A stretch of 64,000 bases of DNA from Dimorphilus gyrociliatus (Eukaryota > Animalia > Annelida). Location of the stretch: the NCBI GenBank assembly GCA_904063045.1, contig CAJFCJ010000020.1, positions 1,356,916-1,420,915 of the forward strand, written 5' to 3'. Shown here piece by piece: positions 49,233-61,211 of this stretch. Position numbers and translations under genes: made by a program. The notes beneath the pieces were generated by a model, which saw only the letters and a list, made by a program, of their open reading frames with translations, did no database searches and was not told the origin of the DNA. The first letter of the stretch is position 1. Every line of letters begins with the position of its first letter.

Positions 49233-52200
49233 CTAGCTATGAACTACATCCCATACAGTAATTGAACAGAAAGAAGCTGTTACCAGTCGCTTGCCTGATG
49301 GGTCAAACTTGATAACAGTTATGCTATCATCATAAGGACTAAAGTCTTGAAAAGACCCTTCGAAATAGTCCATAAGGGTTAAAAGCCGATCTCGAGAGCC
49401 CAGACCAATTAGAGATCCACCTACATCAAAACAAACAAGATCATGTACTATTGGTAAAGTTCGCACAATTCGTTGAGCAGTTAAATTGTATATAGATAAT
49501 TCATTGGCCGAGATCTTTTCATCAAAAATTACTACGCAATCGGGTTCATCCTGAGAAAAACAAGCTAACGTCTTTCCTTTCTTCTCTTTGTTGACAGAGA
49601 TTCGAGGTAAGGTAATCCAATCTTCTAATTCGCATCTGTCTTGACACCAATCAGCTTTCCAAACACTTATCCTGGAATCTTCTGATGTTGCTAGCCAACG
49701 GGTACCTAGAACTTGAATACCGGTGATAGGAGAACCGGAATGAGCTTTTAAAACTCTTACTGTTAGAGCAGTACTTAAACTAGTAGCTGCAATTATGCCA
49801 TCAGTTGAACCTGATAGGACGATATTTGACATTATGGCAATAGCTGTCACGTCTTTTGAATGGGGAACTATCTTTGATAGCATTTTGACAAGCTGAAGAT
49901 CAAAAATCCTTATTGTGCCGTCGCTATAGCCGACAACCAGAAAATTGCGTTCCCAAGCCATCTTAGTTGCACTCACATTTTTTGCTTTGACATCGAATTG
50001 CAAAGTTAACTCTTTGGATGTCCAAACCCGAACTGAACCGTCTTGACAACAAGTAGCTACACAATCATCTCTAACGATCAAGTCTGTTACGTATTTAGGA
50101 TGACCACCAACAAGACGAACGCTATTCTGATCAAGCCAATTAACGTACCATAATGTATTGCCACTTGTTCCCACTAAACCCATCTCAAGAGTTTCGTTCC
50201 ATGTCATCGATGTTATGATTCCATCTAGAGTCATTTCACTTAGTAATGTAACATTTGCATCTCCCTTGGGCGAAAGAGCTTCTTCAGTCGACCATAAACG
50301 AAGCGTTTTACCACCACTAACAACTTTTTTTGGTGAATTTGAACAAGCTAAACATAATATTTCGTCTCTCTCACTAGCAGTCCAATGGAGAACACAATTT
50401 CCCCTTTTAACGTCCCAGGCGCTAACTGAACCTTTCGAAGTACCTACATAATATATACTCTCTGAATCGACAACACAAGTTAAATCGCTGTCAAAAAGTT
50501 CTCTTGGTGCCCTAGTTTCTTCAACTTTTAGAGTTTTATCTGAGTCATCAATTGTCCAAAACAGAAGCAGACCATTCTCAGCCGTTGTTAATAGTTGACC
50601 AGTATATGCTTTTGGCCAAGAAACATCGTGCATTATTAGCTGAGAAGTAGCGCTAGCATATATTTCATAACGATCTGTTGTGAAAACAATTAATCTTCTA
50701 TCCGTATAATCTCCTATTGCAGCTAGGAATCTATCATCATTCGAATATTTCATAGCTACTATTTCACTCTCTAGGTCTCTTAACTCAGTTCTCTTTTTCT
50801 TTGAATCAACATTCCATATGAATATCTGACCTCTTGAGGATGATGCAATTTGAGAACTATCATTAGACAATTCAATAGTTGAGATTTGTTCCATATGGCC
50901 ACATAAATAAAATTGTTTATCACCACCTAGCTCATCTACTATGACTACACAACCACTTGAATAGACCATGAGTCCACTTTCAGACGACCAGGCCAAGTTA
51001 TTCCGTCCTTCACCATCAAAACCAATAGTATATGACATTTTTATCCCAGCCGATTCCTCTGAGGGCAAGTACCGCCTGTGTGCTAAGGAACCATCTTTTC
51101 GACGTTGTCTAAAATGCCGTTTCGTTGACGGTTGAGCATATTCACGTTGAGGAGATGGTTCACGTTGTTCAATAATCATGGCTGGCTGAATTAATGACGA
51201 GGACAAACGGTTTTCTAATGACTCGGGTTTAATTGTTTCTATTAATTCTTCATTTTGATCTGATTCAATATCCTGTCCAGCTAAATTTTCGGGATCACGA
51301 GCGATTTCGCTCAATTTGTCTATATCATCCGAGTTTACGTCATCTTGTGGTTCATCTCTTACAGCTATTTCTTCTACCTCAGGCCTTAAGAAATCGCTTA
51401 TTGTTGGAAGAGGTGCGTTAAAATCCCAAAAAAGGATAGCTGACGAGCTACAAGACGCTATTGTCAATTGATCGTCCGACAAAATGAGCTTATTAACTGT
51501 AGATCCATGACCAATGAAAACTTGGAATTTAGCATCTCTTCTTCTCCAAACTTTTTCATAGCCCCAAACTTTCAGTACATCATCGTCTCCACCTGATAGA
51601 ACATGTGGAGATAGACAACAAGAAACTGAAGTGACGGATTTTCTATGGGCTTCGTCTAAGCTCGATAATATCCTTCCAGTTTGAGAGCAAATTCTGACGA
51701 TTTTCGAACAACAACCAGCTAACACATATTGTTGATTAGGGTGAAAACTAATACAGTTGATATCTCCCCCAACATCGCATCGAATGAGTTCGTCCAGTGA
51801 ACTAGCTTCTAGGATGTTCAGAGTTCCTTTGGTAATAGCGGGGACAGCGAGTTTTGTATAATCCGAGGATAGAGCTAAATCAATGGAATCTGTTTGTTTT
51901 GTGACGAAAGGTAATTGTCTTACAATTCTCAATCCGTTACATTCGTAAAGTGTAAGTGTCCCATCTACATCAGAGGCGTAAATATGTAACAGACCGTAGG
52001 CTATACCACTTATGGGTTTTTTGGAAGATCGACTTTCGTGCAAGATACAAGTTCGAGGTATATCTAAAATTCTCACTGCGCCTGATTTAAATCCAACTGC
52101 CAAGTACGGTTCTCTGACAGATCCGGAAACTTTTAGAGGAGCGTCTTGAGGGGCAGTGAAATCATACAGTTGTTGAATATCATCCCATATACGAATGGTC

Positions 52201-54124
52201 CTATCCTCACCTATTGATACAATTTGGCGACCAACCTTACTCAAATCTTTGATATTCGAAGCATGACCTCTACAAAGAGTTGTGAATGATCTTGTTGCAA
52301 TATCCAATACGCCGAGGCTACTAGATTTAGTAGCTGCTGCAACTCTTAAGCCATCGGGAGAAAAGAGAGTTTTGACTGCCTCATTCTCGAGATCAGCTTC
52401 AAGTAGAACCTTTGCAAAATCATGAGGCCATTGCCTTAAAATTCCATCATTTGAGGCGGTAGCGCACATCGAATCCGATATGGAAATGGAGTTAAGTTCC
52501 AGACCATTTCCTCCACTTGCAACTAAACGCCTGGCTTGAACAACAGACATCCTTTCGAAATCAACTTCTAAAACATGACCTGAAGAGGCGCATGCATAAA
52601 CCCGCCTTCTATCTGTACTTACAGCAACATCGGTTAAATCTAGATCACTGACAGGTAATACAATTGGAGCGGATCTGAGCGAAGATTCTTTAATTCGCCA
52701 AATTCTTAAATTTTGTTTTCCACATGAAGCAAAGCGAACGATATTTGATAAATGAGATACAATTTTAATTGCCGTTATATCGACATCTGTGTGAGCTTTA
52801 ACTAAGCATTGGACTTTTCCAGATTTTGCTTGCGAGGTTTCCCATATCATTGCCAATGTTTTACCGTACGAGTCACGACCAATACCGCAAACAATTTTTG
52901 CATCGCTTGATATATCCAAAAGTCGGCATCCCGGAGCTTGAATTACAGATAAACACTTTCCTTTATCCAAATCCCAAAGTCTTGCCAAACCATTGGAATC
53001 TGCAGAGACTAGGAGGCCTCTTGCGCTTGACAAGCAAGTCACCTTTCCTGTGTGACCAACAAAAAATCTTTGTTCGCGTCTATCAACATTTAGGGCTATT
53101 ATTATGGCATGGGCAGAATAGACGATTTCGTCTGATCGTAAATTCCATGTTAGTAAAAGGGGATTAAGACCAACAACACTTTTTAAACGAAGAATAGGAT
53201 CCGGCTTTAATCCATTTCCAATTTCTTCCACATTTTCCTCAACATCTGCAAACTTTTTACCGTTTGATTTTGACACATGAACGTGTTTTGCTAAATCATC
53301 GGAGAGTATATTAACGTTTACTTCTGGAAGTTCCTTGATGATTGGTCTTTTATTTGAGATTGATGAAAAATCTGAAATTTCCTCAACTAGTTTCGATGAA
53401 CCTTTCGATGGATAACTCGTCAAGAAATTGTTATCATCTGGAAATTTTATAAAATCGAAAATATCATGCCACTTTACACCAGTTGGAGGCTGTAGGCCCA
53501 GATCTCTTGGTAATTTGTCAGCTTCGTACAATGTATTAGACGTTCCGATCGATTTTACTGCTACATTCGCGCATATCTTTATAGATTTTGTTGATGAGAA
53601 GGTACGATGAACGTAATTCGATAATAAATTTGATAAATCTAGGCATAGAATAGTCCATCTAGTTTTAAATGTGGGTTTTCCATTAACTGTAGAACTACTG
53701 ATAACTGGTAGTTGAATCCAAGTTGAAGTTGCCTTAGAAACTTTAAACATATTGGATAAAGATATGCGTACAACGAGACAATCGGGAGTGGTAACATCAA
53801 TATGGAATACAAAGTATTTGTCGGCTACTGGTTTATAAGTGATGTAAAAATATTTCCCAATAAGATTCAAAGAGCCCGATTTGGGCATAAACATATAGTT
53901 TGCAGCCGGAATCGCCCCATTAATTGACCATATTGAGCCCTTGGCATCTTTATCCATTGAATTTACTACATCCCCTTGTATTTTTACTCGTTTCCAGTCC
54001 GTCTGCTTCAAATGCCGAAAGACGTTTACAAAAGGCTGCTGCCAAACTGTAATAGTTTAAATTTTATAAAATTTGTGCAACTTAAAACTAGAAAAAAATA
54101 CTCATACATACGTTGTTGTGACAT
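49233..54124 (-). CDS. WDR90: WD repeat-containing protein 90 (CFAP20/DUF667-like N-domain plus WD40 propellers)
   Basis: WQQPFVNVFRH...WKRVKIQGDV N-terminus, PDPILRL..VVG, REQRFFVGHT and many WD repeats. Tiny first exon 54112-54124, then one exon of about 4.8 kb. Confidence 0.92.
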
Positions 54125-54591: not shown

Positions 54592-55968
54592 TCAACTTCC
54601 AAAGTTAATCTGAGACGCAAAGTGAGAAATTAAAAATATTATAACCATACCAGTTATTAAACCAAGATTCTGTAGGAAAAATGTAATTAAACTTGAACGA
54701 TTCCCCCGCTCCAACGCTTCTTCTTCTGCAGCGTGATTAACTTCGGGAAGCATATCAACTAAAGATATGTAAAGAAACATGCCACCGGTTAAACCAAATA
54801 TCCAAACATCCCCACTGGAATTTTCCCCTACTATAATACCAGCTATCATACCACCATAACAAGTACAAGCACTTAAAAAATTACATAACATTGCCTGCTT
54901 AATTTTCATTCCAGAACTCAAAAGGATAGCGAAATCTCCTAATTCATGGGGAAGCTCTTCGCAAAAAATCCCAATTGAAACGGAGACACCGGCTAAAACT
55001 GAACCTGTAAAAGCTGCTCCTATGGCTAATCCATCCATAAAATTGTGGACTCCATCGCCGAAAACAATCATCCAAGCTACAGGTTTAATTTGTTTGCTGC
55101 CTGAAAAATTTTTTTCAACCATATCATTTGTCTTTCCTGAATTCACCGACGCTTGACTATCATATGATCGAAAGTTAGATTGGCTTTGATGATAGCTTCT
55201 TTGCTGTGAGGAAATTGGAAATTGCTGCTTTTCTGCAGGATCTATTTGGCTGTTCGTCTCAGTAGCATATTTCCTTTCGCGCCATTCCATTATAAACTTT
55301 AAAGCTCGCTCTACTAAAAAAAATCCATATATACCAGCCAATACAACTACACATCTGTTTTCATAGGTAGCGGTATGTTCACTTCCTTCAGTTAATTCTA
55401 AAGCTTCTGGTATAAGTACTAAAATGGCGGAAGCAACTAAGGTTCCTATAGCAAGACAGACCATAAATGCTAAGACCTTCTTATAAATCTTTGTTTTAGA
55501 TAGTGGATGGAAAAGAGCTCCTAGTAAAGAAGCGCAACTAATAACAGTTACGCTTAAAATAGAATATCCCCAAATCTCTCCTTTAGATGGTTTCTTTCGA
55601 GATGTTTTCTCATCTTTAGATCTACATTTTTCGTTCTGAGATTGATAAAGAATGGCCGGGGATAGGGCTTTCATGCCATTCGAATCCACGTCATCCTGAG
55701 ATGGAAAATATAACTGCAAAAGATTTTTGCCATTTAGACATTTATCTAAAGAACAATTGTCAAAAGAACAATTGAAAGGTTCATGGCCTATGACAACGCC
55801 TGTTTTCTTCAATAGTTTATCAATGCCCAACGGTGACATTCGATTATTTACTCCATAATCAGACATTAACTTGAGAAGGTGCTTATCCTCGTGGCTTTCC
55901 CCTTCTACACCAATCAGGTACACAGCATTGCAAAGGAACACGGCAAGGGCAAACATAGTAATCGTCAT
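54592..55968 (-). CDS. LIV-1 subfamily zinc/manganese transporter, ZIP8/ZIP14-like, single exon
   Basis: Signal peptide, CL..SPAILYQ, GDGVHNFMDGLAIGAAF, CEELPHELGDFAILL and FLYISLVDMLPE. Confidence 0.92.
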   Translation of the reverse strand: MTITMFALAVFLCNAVYLIGVEGESHEDKHLLKLMSDYGVNNRMSPLGIDKLLKKTGVVIGHEPFNCSFDNCSLDKCLNGKNLLQLYFPSQDDVDSNGMKALSPAILYQSQNEKCRSKDEKTSRKKPSKGEIWGYSILSVTVISCASLLGALFHPLSKTKIYKKVLAFMVCLAIGTLVASAILVLIPEALELTEGSEHTATYENRCVVVLAGIYGFFLVERALKFIMEWRERKYATETNSQIDPAEKQQFPISSQQRSYHQSQSNFRSYDSQASVNSGKTNDMVEKNFSGSKQIKPVAWMIVFGDGVHNFMDGLAIGAAFTGSVLAGVSVSIGIFCEELPHELGDFAILLSSGMKIKQAMLCNFLSACTCYGGMIAGIIVGENSSGDVWIFGLTGGMFLYISLVDMLPEVNHAAEEEALERGNRSSLITFFLQNLGLITGMVIIFLISHFASQINFGS

Positions 55969-56441: not shown

Positions 56442-58546
56442 ATGAGTTCGAAATTTTGCGATCTTTGCCGAATTCAGGGTTTATCTCCACCTGTAGCGGA
56501 CAATAAATGTGTAAATTGTAATTTCTATTTTTGTTCAAGTTGTCAAGCGACTCACGCAGCAAACGAGAATACAAAACACCATATTTTTCAATCTGCTGAG
56601 AATTTTTCTAATTCTTCCGAAATTTTTGAAGATATTTGTGCGATTCATAATAAGGAAAAAGAATTATTTTGTTCCAAATGTGCAGAAGCTATATGCATTA
56701 GTTGTAAATTCGAAAATCACGATGGTCATAAAACAGATTTTGTTAAAGATTTAATAACAGATGTCAGAAGGAAATTGATGAATTATTTAAGTAAGCTACA
56801 AGAGGAACAGGACAGTTTGATAACTGCTTCTAAAGATGCAGCTGTTAAAAGAACAATGTTAAATGATAATTTCAATAAAATTATCTCAGATATTGAGAAA
56901 CAGCGATCAGAGTTGATAGCCTTGATAAATCAATGGTATGAGAAGAACTCGGAGAAAATTAAAACTTTTTATGCGAAGAGTATTGAAAATTTGGGAATAA
57001 AAGATATGGAACAAATCTCTAAAGTTGTCTTAGAAAATTCATCATTGGCTAAGGAAGCTTTGAAAAATGGAGCTGATAATTCAATTTTGTGTATTTGGGA
57101 AAAAGTGAAAAACTACGAAAAAGTTTTCGAAAAGCAGCCGTCAACTGAGATTCCAACAGTTTATAAGTTTATACCTGGATCATGTTCCAACTTAGAAGAA
57201 AAATCCATTTTTGGAGAATTGATATTAAATGAGAATTCAGTTGAAAAAAAAGGAACAAAAGAGGCAAAAGAGGCAAAAGAAATAAAAGAAATAAAAGAAG
57301 AGGTTACTAAATCAGAAATTGTCAAACAATCGGATGCCACTACAACAAAAGATAATAAGAAAACTACACCTCCAACACCTACAGATGCAACATCAACAGA
57401 TGAAAATTCACATAGGATTTATCCTTTAAACTCTGTAAAAACAATTGACGCCAGAACGGAAAACAAGCCTGGTTTTATTCGTTCTATTCTTGGTGTGGCA
57501 TCGTGTGAATCGGTTGTATCTATGAACGACAGTATCTATGTCGCCGATCCCTATTTAAAATCAATTTCAGTGTTTGATAATTCAGGTACCTTCGTTAAAG
57601 CAATTAGCTTGGAGTTTTCTCCAAAATGCATTGGTTCAATGAAAAACGGAGATTTAATCGTAACCTCTGGAGGGTCTGTTTTCGTGTATAGTGAATCAAA
57701 TTCAATCCGAGAGTCTTGCGTTTCGTTCAGAGAGGCATTTGGAGCAGTTGAAATTAATGACGAAGAAATTGCCGTTTCAGACAGAGGAGAGGTAATTTCG
57801 TGTTTTTTTATAACTTTTGTGGATCATTTTTCAATTAATTACTTGTTAATTATTCAAAATAGGGAGATATTTTTATATTAGATTCTAAGACTCTTGAACT
57901 CAAGAGAAAGATTAAGGGTGGAGGTGGATGGCCGAGCTATTTAGCTATTGATAGTAATTTATATATCTACGCCGTATTTACTGGATGGGCGAAAGACAGT
58001 TTAAAGGTGTTTGACAGTCAGGTAACGTATCAATTGTTTATAGATTTCTCTTTATTTCCTCTTTACATGCTATTCCCCATTTTATATGATTCATTGAATA
58101 TTTCTTTGTTTTTACCACACTTAAAAGCTATTTCATCTTTACACAATAATTTACATTGAGTCATTTTATATCATTAGTCTACGCCAGAATTTCTAAACCT
58201 TCATCTAAGTTTCATGTTGACATATTAATATATTCATATCACCTCTAAACAGACTGGAAAGAAAATCAGAGAATACGTATCCAAAACGGAAGTTGAATTC
58301 GGAGAGATAAAAGGACTTTGTATCGACAGTAATAATAATATCCTTGTGAGTGATTCGGAAAAACAGAGTATCCTTATCTGCTACGATTATAATGGAGTAT
58401 GGGAAATTTTAGAGACAAAGGAACTTTACGATTTGGATAAACCGTCTGACATAACGTTCAGAAACTCTAACGAACTGTGGATTTTGGACGTGAATAGGTT
58501 AAAAGTTTACGAATACACCACCAATGATAATCAAAGTACTATTTGA
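56442..58546 (+). CDS. RING-less TRIM-like protein: two B-boxes, coiled coil, NHL-like repeats; 3 exons
   Basis: CDLC...CVNC..YFCSSC..TH, CAIH..KELFCSKCAEAICISC...HDGH, then IYVAD, PSYLAID, GLCIDSNNNILVSD and PSDIT repeats. Confidence 0.8.
57258..57299 (+). repeat. In-frame 9-nt tandem repeat encoding KEAKEAKEIKEIKE
   Basis: AAAGAGGCA x2 then AAAGAAATA x2 inside the TRIM-like linker. Confidence 0.75.
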
Positions 58547-58926: not shown

Positions 58927-59233
58927 AGAAAAACGAGAATATAAAAGTATAGAGACGGACTAAAATATTTCCAAATGGTACGGAACCGATCAATTAGTCG
59001 TTCAAACTTATTAATGCTCTTTTTTTATATGAATAATTTAGGCTTATAAAAAATGTTAGATATATCTCCAGGTAAGAATTATGCGCTATTCAATTTCATT
59101 TTCTAATAATTATTCATATTTTCAATTCGAAAATATTATATAAGATAATAATAAAAAAAAGTCTATTTTTAGACTTTTATATGCATTTACATGCAGGTTC
59201 TATATACTTATCTACAGGTATATATATTTATAT

Positions 59234-59283
59234 TGTGTGTGGTGTATGTGTGTATGTATGTATGTATGTGTGTGTGTGTGTGT
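59234..59283. repeat. Compound (TG)n/(TATG)n microsatellite
   Basis: Directly visible tandem repeats. Confidence 0.9.
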
Positions 59284-59595
59284 TTCTATAAAATATTAAG
59301 TATATATCCATATATTTTAATGCTAATAGAGATCTCGGGACAACTAGCTTAGTCATTTCATTGTTATTATCCAAATCTATAGTTTATGTAGATTATATAA
59401 TCCTTCAAAAAAGGAAAACAAATAAACCTTTCTCCTCCCCCCCTCATCTAATTATAATTCCAACACAATTGACTACTCTCTATTCTAACGCCTCCTAGTA
59501 GTCTATTGTTATATAATTTGCAGAAGTTTTCGTGCTGCCAGTGAACGCTTCCTTGTTCATTTCTGTTTAAACTTTTTCTTCGATTTTTTAACAAG

Positions 59596-60339
59596 ATGGT
59601 TCGAAGAGAACCTGAATTTAGAAAACTGCTTTTTCAGGTAAGTCTCTTATTCTTTGATAAAATACAAAAAAAAGTAATTTGAAAAAAAAAGACTGGATTA
59701 GGAGGAATAAGGAGCGATAAAAGTTTGGAATTAAGAATACAAGAGATTGGTAATAAAACTTATCTTGCTTCTTTCCAAACTGGTTCGAATTTAACTAATG
59801 ATGTATATCGGAAGAACGAAGATGCTGTTGGAGCTTTATATTATGTTTGTGTGGTCGTTGTCATTTACGGATTTGGTATTATAATGATGATTGGATCAGT
59901 TATTAATAAAGGCAAACATGATAAATCTATATACAAATATATTGCTGATCTGGATAATTTGAAAAGGCTGGAAAAGAGGGAAGAGAAGTTTAAAACTCGC
60001 CTTCTCATGCAAAAGAGAAGAATCCCGTTTAGGCCTACGTCATCAACATCCCAAGCGATATTACCGATTAAGAAAGAAGGCGGGAAGAAAAACCCTTGGG
60101 AGGATATCGCTTCTGGCTCACCATCGAAAAAAAAGGAAAATAGTGAGCGTCAATGTACACCCGTCACTTGTTCGACGAGCGCTGAGGAGAAAATTGGCCA
60201 ACTGGACAAGAAAAGAGATGACCCTTTTACCATACAAATAGAAGATGATGCGGAAACCGAGGAGAATAGTTATGGAGCAAACTTCTCAGGACTAGTAGCC
60301 GTTAAAGAAGAGGACGATGATGAGTACGACTATGTTTAA
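59596..60339 (+). CDS. KCNE/MinK-like single-pass membrane protein, copy A
   Basis: N-glycosylation sequons NKT and NLT, then GALYYVCVVVVIYGFGIIMMIGSVINKGKHD and an acidic tail. A putative first exon 59596-59637 ends at a GTAAGT donor; its acceptor is uncertain. Confidence 0.6.
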
Positions 60340-60602
60340 ACTATTTAAGAAAAGGGAATAATTTATTTCAGGTCAAAGCATTATTAGTTGAATGAATTTG
60401 TTTTTTAATTAAATTAGGTAACAAATTAACTTAATTTAATACTCATAAAGTGATAGGAGAGATTTTTTCTAACTAATTGTGTTCTTATTAAAGTCTCAAA
60501 ACATCAATATTCATGATTTATTGTCTAAAATAGAAAAGAAAAAAAATTATAGCTCATCCCGAACGCCATCTAGTATCCAAACATTTGTAAAATATCTAAA
60601 GT

Positions 60603-61211
60603 TTATGGTGTTTCCCCATAAACGTCTATTTCAGTATCGGAAGCTGCATCATTTAACTCTAAAACTACAGTTGACGAAGGACATTCATCAATTGATGTTG
60701 TTCGAATTTCTATATTTTCACGTTGGCGAGGCGATATAAAGCATGTTTCTTCCGTTTGTTCATCTAAATCTTCAAAACTTGAAAGCTGGTTTGGTTCTGA
60801 TAAAGCTACTCTTGCATTTTTAACAACTCTTCCATCAGTCCCTCGAAATTCAGCTAATTTATTCGTCGTATTCAACTGAAAAGCAACAAAAAAAACAAAA
60901 TTTAATGAATATTCCCGAATAGAGAGATTTGTTTCAATTGATGAAAATAAAGATAATCTTACAAGTTGTAATTGCCTCTCTCTCTTTCTAACGAATGCCA
61001 TCTCCTTTAGATAAACATTTAGCTTTCTATCAATCTTATTTTTACGAATGTGGGATGCAATCATCATAATCATTGAACAGGCGTATAGCAAAATAACAAC
61101 AACAACGTAGTAGAGAGCTCCGACGTCGTCATGTTCCTCATTCTTTTTTTTGTTGATGAATTTAGCGACGAAGGTAGAATTCCCTCTTGGTTCTATTTCG
61201 AATTCTATCAT
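60603..61211 (-). CDS. KCNE/MinK-like single-pass membrane protein, copy B
   Basis: NST sequon, then GALYYVVVVILLYACSMIMMIASHIRKNKIDRKLNVYLKE. Probable intron 60876-60962. Confidence 0.65.
   Translation of the reverse strand: MIEFEIEPRGNSTFVAKFINKKKNEEHDDVGALYYVVVVILLYACSMIMMIASHIRKNKIDRKLNVYLKEMAFVRKRERQLQLVRLSLFSSIETNLSIREYSLNFVFFVAFQLNTTNKLAEFRGTDGRVVKNARVALSEPNQLSSFEDLDEQTEETCFISPRQRENIEIRTTSIDECPSSTVVLELNDAASDTEIDVYGETP

Follow-up and report, generated by a model that had tools for sequence, protein, structure and literature searches.

Does an annelid genome encode single-pass proteins related to the KCNE and MPS subunits of potassium channels? The question is raised by two convergent genes, A (DgyrCDS12587; 59596..60339, + strand) and B (DgyrCDS12588; 61211..60603, - strand), which lie in a 64,000-nucleotide stretch of DNA from Dimorphilus gyrociliatus (the window; GCA_904063045.1, contig CAJFCJ010000020.1, positions 1,356,916 to 1,420,915). 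According to papers of 2024 and 2026, invertebrates have no known kcne genes; a 2026 paper (PMC13516689) calls the MPS proteins of C. elegans nematode-specific and only 'sometimes described as KCNE-like'. An original prediction, made from the DNA letters alone, had proposed that A and B are an inverted pair of KCNE/MinK-like proteins and may represent an undescribed family of channel modulators. We find that the two genes are anciently diverged paralogs in a conserved lophotrochozoan family of single-pass proteins, and that this family is likely to be homologous to C. elegans MPS-1. With somewhat more confidence than doubt, we suggest that A and B would act as lophotrochozoan MPS/KCNE-type accessory subunits of a voltage-gated K+ channel.

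The two proteins resemble each other as had been proposed. The convergent open reading frames (ORFs) were located as stated, and a BLASTP alignment of A with B (33/96 identities, 34%; E 4e-15) spans their common motif, KNE..D.VGALYYV.VV...Y. The KCNE-like topology assigned to them was also recovered, with one helix, a short N-terminus carrying a sequon on the predicted outside and the C-terminus predicted inside. In both proteins acidic residues precede the helix and a basic juxtamembrane segment follows it, leading into a divergent acidic tail; by eye, the N-termini are hydrophilic and have no signal peptide. Sequons of the N-x-S/T type are present as NKT and NLT in gene A and as NST in gene B. 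The conserved one is N35-K36-T37 in gene A (59752..59760, +), which aligns with the family column N11/T13 (numbered as in gene B), and N11-S12-T13 in gene B itself (61173..61181, -), where it sits at the turn of a predicted beta-hairpin. The transmembrane helix covers about A59-I85 of gene A (AVGALYYVCVVVVIYGFGIIMMIGSVI; 59824..59904, +), as placed by motif scan and alignment, and V30-I55 of gene B (VGALYYVVVVILLYACSMIMMIASHI; 61047..61124, -), as placed by alignment, conservation, motif scan and an AlphaFold2 (AF2) model.

The AF2 model of gene B, built on an alignment of 138 sequences, predicts a beta-hairpin ahead of a long helix. Strands 3-9 and 13-19 are modelled with a predicted local distance difference test score (pLDDT) of about 88-90, with N11 in the turn between them, and are followed by one continuous helix, 29-94 (pLDDT 87-97), and then by a disordered tail. 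Only about residues 30-55 of this helix are hydrophobic; beyond the membrane it extends for some 40 cytoplasmic residues, and this part is basic. When the model was compared with PDB structures by Foldseek, nothing matched at E<=0.001, which is unsurprising for a single helix; the structure neighbours in the Atlas, histidine-kinase helices with a TM-score below 0.5, are uninformative.

How widely is this architecture shared? Among 1.84 billion proteins the core profile of the family matches 463 representative clusters (50% identity) at E<=1e-3, 229 of them at E<=1e-10. All named members come from annelids or molluscs, are labelled hypothetical or uncharacterized, and carry no Pfam domain. Relatives of gene B that are 50-73% identical over the first 90 residues occur in annelids (Paralvinella), bivalves and other molluscs, and a further search added named members from Capitella, Aplysia and Mya. 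In the literature searched we found no description of the annelid/mollusc family, nor any report of a mollusc or annelid homolog of KCNE or MPS, in keeping with the suggestion that the family is undescribed.

The family falls into two subtypes, of which gene A is A-type and gene B is B-type. The B-type signature is IAS[HY]IRKNKxD..L..YLKEMA.VRKRERQ, often with a C-terminal QVVSSV or QVVSTV; the A-type signature is IGS.IKK...D.GV.KYMKDMDK.RRLERRQEKFKTRL, or in brief IGS-x-I-K/N-K ... EKFKTRL, often with an end of the form EE...V. Two further A-type genes are present in Dimorphilus (DgyrCDS8326 and DgyrCDS7261). We noted separately that three Dimorphilus A-type proteins (P0174, P0176 and P0177) have a basic N-terminal extension, MVRR/MARR/MVRW ... 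[LV]L[FI]Q, before the hairpin; in gene A this extension is encoded by a separate 42-nucleotide (nt) exon 1, and it is puzzling in a protein with its N-terminus outside.

Conservation in this family is concentrated in the membrane. Among 138 representatives Y35 and S53 never vary; conservation is 94% or higher at each of N11, D28, G31, A32, V36, V39, Y43, S46, I47, M50 and I51, and 90% or higher at each of L33, K57 and D61. The sequon column is similarly constrained, with N at N11 in 123/128 representatives and S or T at position 13 in 125/128; an ectodomain sequon is found in 185 of 188 members. The outer end of the helix, D..GALYYV, is almost invariant across annelids and molluscs. From V39 onwards the conserved residues are spaced i, i+3/4, i+7, and thus mark out one face of the helix, formed by V39, Y43/G44, S46/I47, M50/I51 and S53 and near-invariant in both phyla. 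The conserved helix that had been noted in the two paralogs is thus strongly constrained, and both genes are expressed. Since the near-invariant residues lie on one side, we infer that the helix would have a conserved multi-pass partner against which it packs within the membrane.

The C-terminus raises a different possibility, that the proteins act chiefly as PDZ-anchored adaptors in scaffolding or trafficking, at junctions or synapses for instance, and that their helix would serve self-association and not channel docking. V, L or I ends 126 of the 164 apparently complete members, and 50 of these ends have the class I form [ST]-x-[VLI], such as QVVSSV; the long cytoplasmic helix and disordered tail of the AF2 model would also suit an adaptor. 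Gene A keeps its D-Y-V end. However, gene B ends in GETP and has lost the motif, and its B-type ortholog in a dinophilid relative (73% identical) lacks it too, which indicates that the motif is dispensable while the helix stays invariant. Taken with the concentration of conservation in the membrane and not in the tail, this makes adaptors an improbable explanation. In channel subunits of the kind that we favour, the C-terminal motif ([ST]-x-V or phi-x-V in most relatives) might still serve PDZ anchoring or export from the endoplasmic reticulum.

What, then, might the partner be? The main basis for inferring a function is the likely homology to MPS-1, an auxiliary subunit of KVS-1, a voltage-gated K+ channel; MPS-1's transmembrane domain is needed, and is enough, for complex formation with KVS-1 (PMC4210162). 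The direct comparisons with KCNE and MPS sequences outside the Pfam and PDB searches used fragments, of 40 amino acids (aa) for KCNE1, 38 aa for KCNE2 and 67 aa for MPS-1, the last being residues 39-105 of the sequence in File S1 of PMC4210162. Against a hidden Markov model (HMM) of the family core, MPS-1 39-105 scores 25.4 bits (P 4.7e-10), a value reached by none of 3000 segment-wise shuffles (maximum 19.4). Against the broad core profile A5 it scores 24.5 bits (E 1.5e-4 at Z=177,635); for comparison, the best match of A5 in PDB scores 19.6 bits and the best natural match 17 bits. The transmembrane part of MPS-1 by itself, comprising the outer boundary and the helix, has a score of 19.1 bits, which none of 2000 shuffles equals, and hhalign gives MPS-1 a probability of 79%. 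Additionally, the top language-model neighbour of gene A is a nematode cluster (0.95; 220/256 features).

The same fragment of MPS-1 also supplies several points that weigh against a channel subunit. The similarity is confined to the transmembrane region: the cytoplasmic part (66-105) scores 1.1 bits, a value equalled by 532/2000 shuffles and not significant. In the chosen register MPS-1 keeps neither S46 nor S53, residues that 97% or more of the family's members share (all of them, for S53), and the hhalign probability is no more than 79%. MPS-1 39-105 has no ISK_Channel match in Pfam, and short transmembrane helices can come to look alike by convergence. As a side observation, MPS-1 39-105 weakly matches the Pfam family PF10125, 'NADHdeh_related' (E 0.003; 17.4 bits, cutoff 27), which may be a home of nematode MPS-type proteins under a misleading name.

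Can the vertebrate KCNE proteins be brought into the same relationship? Their Pfam profile, ISK_Channel (PF02060; cutoff 22.1 bits), is the one matched by most members of the family (14/28 and 6/52 at E<=10), and the individually listed matches have a similar register, starting at profile positions 19-36, ending at 72-97, and spanning ectodomain, helix and inner boundary. By language-model features, the closest named clusters to both proteins carry ISK_Channel and include chordate KCNE4 (0.93 for one protein, with 204 shared features; 0.90 for the other, with 192), and no other named family scores above 0.82. One mollusc cluster among the nearest neighbours, whose membership in the family is not confirmed, is tagged PF02060 in the Atlas for 25% of its proteins, so that some neighbouring mollusc proteins are already labelled in this way in databases. 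Against the family HMM the KCNE1 fragment scores 11.1 bits (reached by 2/3000 segment-wise shuffles) and the KCNE2 fragment 11.4 bits (41/3000), giving p of about 0.001 to 0.01, and hhalign gives KCNE1 a probability of 57-64%. When profile A5 was searched against the 177,635 PDB sequences, KCNE2 was the best natural single-domain match, with an E-value of 0.035, and KCNE1 was found with an E-value of 1.2.

The human KCNE1 string quoted in the original prediction was exact, corresponding to residues 44-83 of the PDB KCNE1 chains, but the alignment drawn from it was not upheld. Pairing ALY with ALY and NVY with NVY needs gaps; HMMER and hhalign instead choose a gapless register, common to the KCNE1 and KCNE2 fragments, in which Y35 falls on KCNE1 Y46 and S53-Y-I-R on S64-Y-I-R. 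Of the KCNE juxtamembrane motif (Y-[IVM]-[RK]-S-[KR]-[KR], then ...NDP[FY]..Y[IV]), the first half occurs in B-type proteins as SYIRKNK (SHIRKNK in gene B), which aligns to KCNE1 S64-K70; the NDP(F/Y) half is absent, and for the invariant Y67 to fall on KCNE1 Y81 a 3-residue gap would be needed.

All of these signals lie under formal thresholds, and this too counts against the proposed role. Neither gene A nor gene B matches ISK_Channel at E<=10, and direct searches of Pfam and PDB with the two genes gave nothing useful. The best-scoring relative reaches 16.4 bits (E 0.0078), below the Pfam cutoff; the best E-value overall is 0.0021, and only 1 of the 138 representatives attains E<=0.01. The narrower core profile A2 finds no KCNE chain in PDB at E<=10. 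In the A5 search, NDUFB11 stands level with KCNE2 at an E-value of 0.039, and a designed repeat protein (E 0.005) ranks above both. The proposed KCNE/MPS affinity is supported in its MPS half, where the similarity is significant; on these scores, the annelid/mollusc proteins would not be placed in the KCNE family proper. Homology to KCNE is plausible, with chances about even or slightly better, but it is not shown: several weak signals agree with one another, and all of them lie at the boundary of noise.

The match to NDUFB11 raises the possibility that A and B are relatives of this mitochondrial complex I subunit (NDUFB11/ESSS). NDUFB11 chains match profile A5 with E-values of 0.04-0.3, and Pfam ESSS (PF10183) is matched by 3/28 and 2/52 members, with a best E-value of 0.014. 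However, the listed ESSS member scores 11.6 bits against a cutoff of 22.8, only the helix is covered (19-36 residues in the NDUFB11 chains), and far more members match ISK_Channel. A near-invariant sequon and a PDZ-like C-terminal motif fit a protein of the secretory pathway, and the family has many paralogs per genome. We regard this kinship as extremely unlikely. NDUFB11 would rather seem to resemble the family by chance, and its match serves as a gauge of the noise. The sub-threshold matches to ESSS/NDUFB11, LMBR1 and EMC3 were rejected as helix look-alikes, and the PDB matches of the whole-length profile A1 and of A2 (huntingtin, CD9 and NDUFB11) as only low-complexity or transmembrane noise.

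Do such look-alikes undermine the comparison as a whole? A and B might be accessory or regulatory single-pass subunits of some other membrane machine, be it a channel, a transporter or a receptor, with the likeness to MPS-1 and KCNE arising convergently from an aromatic/small-residue helix, a basic stop-transfer segment and an acidic outer boundary. Every KCNE signal is sub-threshold, as just described, and since NDUFB11 matches the profile as well as KCNE2 does, look-alikes arise without a common function. The similarity to MPS-1 is limited to about 33 residues, and the KCNE chains and MPS-1 sequence compared show neither the hairpin nor the C-terminal motif. In contrast, the score of MPS-1 lies about 7 bits over the best natural match among all the PDB sequences and above all 3000 shuffles, and three independent kinds of search (Pfam profile, family profile and language-model features) all put KCNE first. 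We therefore consider convergence in some other machine unlikely, although it deserves more weight than either the adaptor or the complex I explanation. A role as MPS/KCNE-type subunits is the reading that we favour, if only slightly over its negation: given significant similarity to MPS-1 and weak similarity to KCNE, the most likely partner would be the alpha subunit of a voltage-gated K+ channel, whose gating and/or trafficking would be tuned by the A- and B-type proteins.

How are the two genes built? The proteins deposited for them, P0174 for gene A and P0001 for gene B, are identical to the spliced products. Contigs of run X1, the one public run that holds the stretch, show the spliced joints of both genes, and the run is therefore RNA-derived. 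Gene A encodes a product of 229 aa in two exons. Exon 1 (59596..59637, +) begins with the ATG at 59596, encodes MVRREPEFRKLLFQ and continues at 59692 in a contig derived from RNA; the 54-nt intron (59638..59691, GT..AG) is seen in a contig of run X1 as the joint 59635->59690 (cut +2). Exon 2 (59692..60339, +), of 215 codons and a stop, encodes the ectodomain, the transmembrane helix, the cytoplasmic helix and an acidic tail ending in EYDYV. Upstream, about 220 nt before the start codon, we noted a TG/TA-rich simple repeat (59191-59374) whose ORFs read CVCVCV / HTHTYIHTY.

Gene B encodes a product of 173 aa, also in two exons, from the ATG at 61211. Exon 1 (60963..61211, -; 83 codons) encodes the beta-hairpin ectodomain, the transmembrane helix and the basic juxtamembrane helix, and exon 2 (60603..60875, -; 90 codons and a stop) the end of the cytoplasmic helix and the disordered acidic tail that ends in GETP. 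Between them lies an 87-nt intron (60876..60962, -), GT..AG on the minus strand, with the joint 60875->60963 and ends CT..AC on the forward strand; it is absent from the deposited protein. This intron is in frame and free of stops, so that the raw ORF of 202 aa runs through it. Gene B as first described is thus a real gene, but 29 of those 202 residues come from the intron and do not belong to the protein. Run X1 also contains a 147-nt contig (60846-60992) that retains the intron, showing that unspliced and spliced forms coexist; the unspliced form, if translated, would add 29 residues to the cytoplasmic helix.

The two stop codons are separated by a spacer of 263 nt (60340..60602), which contains both 3' untranslated regions (UTRs). 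It is spanned by a single 1450-nt contig of run X1 (59400-60875) that extends from upstream of gene A to the last exon of gene B. The 3' UTRs of A and B therefore probably overlap or abut, although such a contig cannot prove a single transcript.

Is the inverted arrangement itself meaningful? In Paralvinella, in Capitella and in the dinophilid relative the family gene has no other member of the family within 10 kb of it. The idea of a conserved inverted pair was rejected on this basis, as the adjacency has no counterpart in the three relatives checked over that range and so does not mark a functional unit. The genes around A and B in the window, which is AT-rich eukaryotic DNA, are unrelated to them. 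A single ORF of 1592 aa (49233-54011, -) combines a CFA20 domain with WDR90/POC16 beta-propellers, and is a WDR90/POC16-like centriole/cilium protein encoded in 4.8 kb without introns. Next to it lies an intron-less ORF of 458 aa (54592-55968, -) that encodes a zinc transporter of the ZIP family (Pfam Zip, E 8e-65), and beyond it an ORF of 479 aa (56442-57881, +) with two B-box zinc fingers, TRIM-like in character.

What would a channel-subunit role imply? A family that is large, strongly constrained and expressed, that matches MPS-1 significantly and whose nearest named neighbour is KCNE makes it possible to test where single-helix K+ channel subunits originated. We offer, tentatively and a little short of an even chance, the idea that nematode MPS and vertebrate KCNE belong to one bilaterian superfamily of single-helix subunits of voltage-gated K+ (Kv) channels, with the annelid/mollusc family as the missing protostome link between them. 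If so, channel modulation of the KCNE type would be older than the vertebrates by several hundred million years, and the conserved lophotrochozoan helix would be the closest to the ancestral channel-docking surface. The family supplies concrete genes for co-expression with invertebrate Kv channels, and its near-invariant helix face can be used for mapping the docking interface. Were the partner something other than a K+ channel, the family would still merit a name, as a deeply conserved accessory protein that has none.

Set beside known systems, the annelid/mollusc proteins come closest to MPS-1, which at 256 aa is comparable in length and likewise crosses the membrane once. Its helix lies at 46-68, and it has an N-terminal sequon, a basic juxtamembrane region that leads into a disordered tail, and a C-terminus in V (LDV). 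The helices align without gaps, pairing G31/G44, Y35/Y48, Y43/F56, I47/I60, I55/I68 and R56/R69 (family/MPS-1). Outside the helix, however, MPS-1 shows no significant similarity to the family (through residue 105), its ectodomain is predicted to be helical and not a hairpin in the supplement of PMC4210162, and PF10125 is not among the 25 most frequent Pfam families listed for the annelid/mollusc proteins. With NDUFB11/ESSS the likeness is that of a mid-helix FGFSIVLVLGS to the family's YGFSIILMIGS, in another compartment and another architecture. Vertebrate KCNE1-6 have in common with the family an N-terminus outside the cell, a glycosylation sequon, one helix, a basic juxtamembrane region and, by eye, no signal peptide, together with a mid-helix (F/Y)G and S-Y-I-R-x-K-K-x-(D/E) at the inner boundary. 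The annelid/mollusc family differs in that it lacks an NDP(F/Y) motif, its ectodomain is a predicted beta-hairpin, its transmembrane helix is far better conserved, its cytoplasmic helix is longer, and its C-terminus bears a V/L/I motif; KCNE is nevertheless its nearest named family by Pfam match count, by language-model features and by profile search of PDB.

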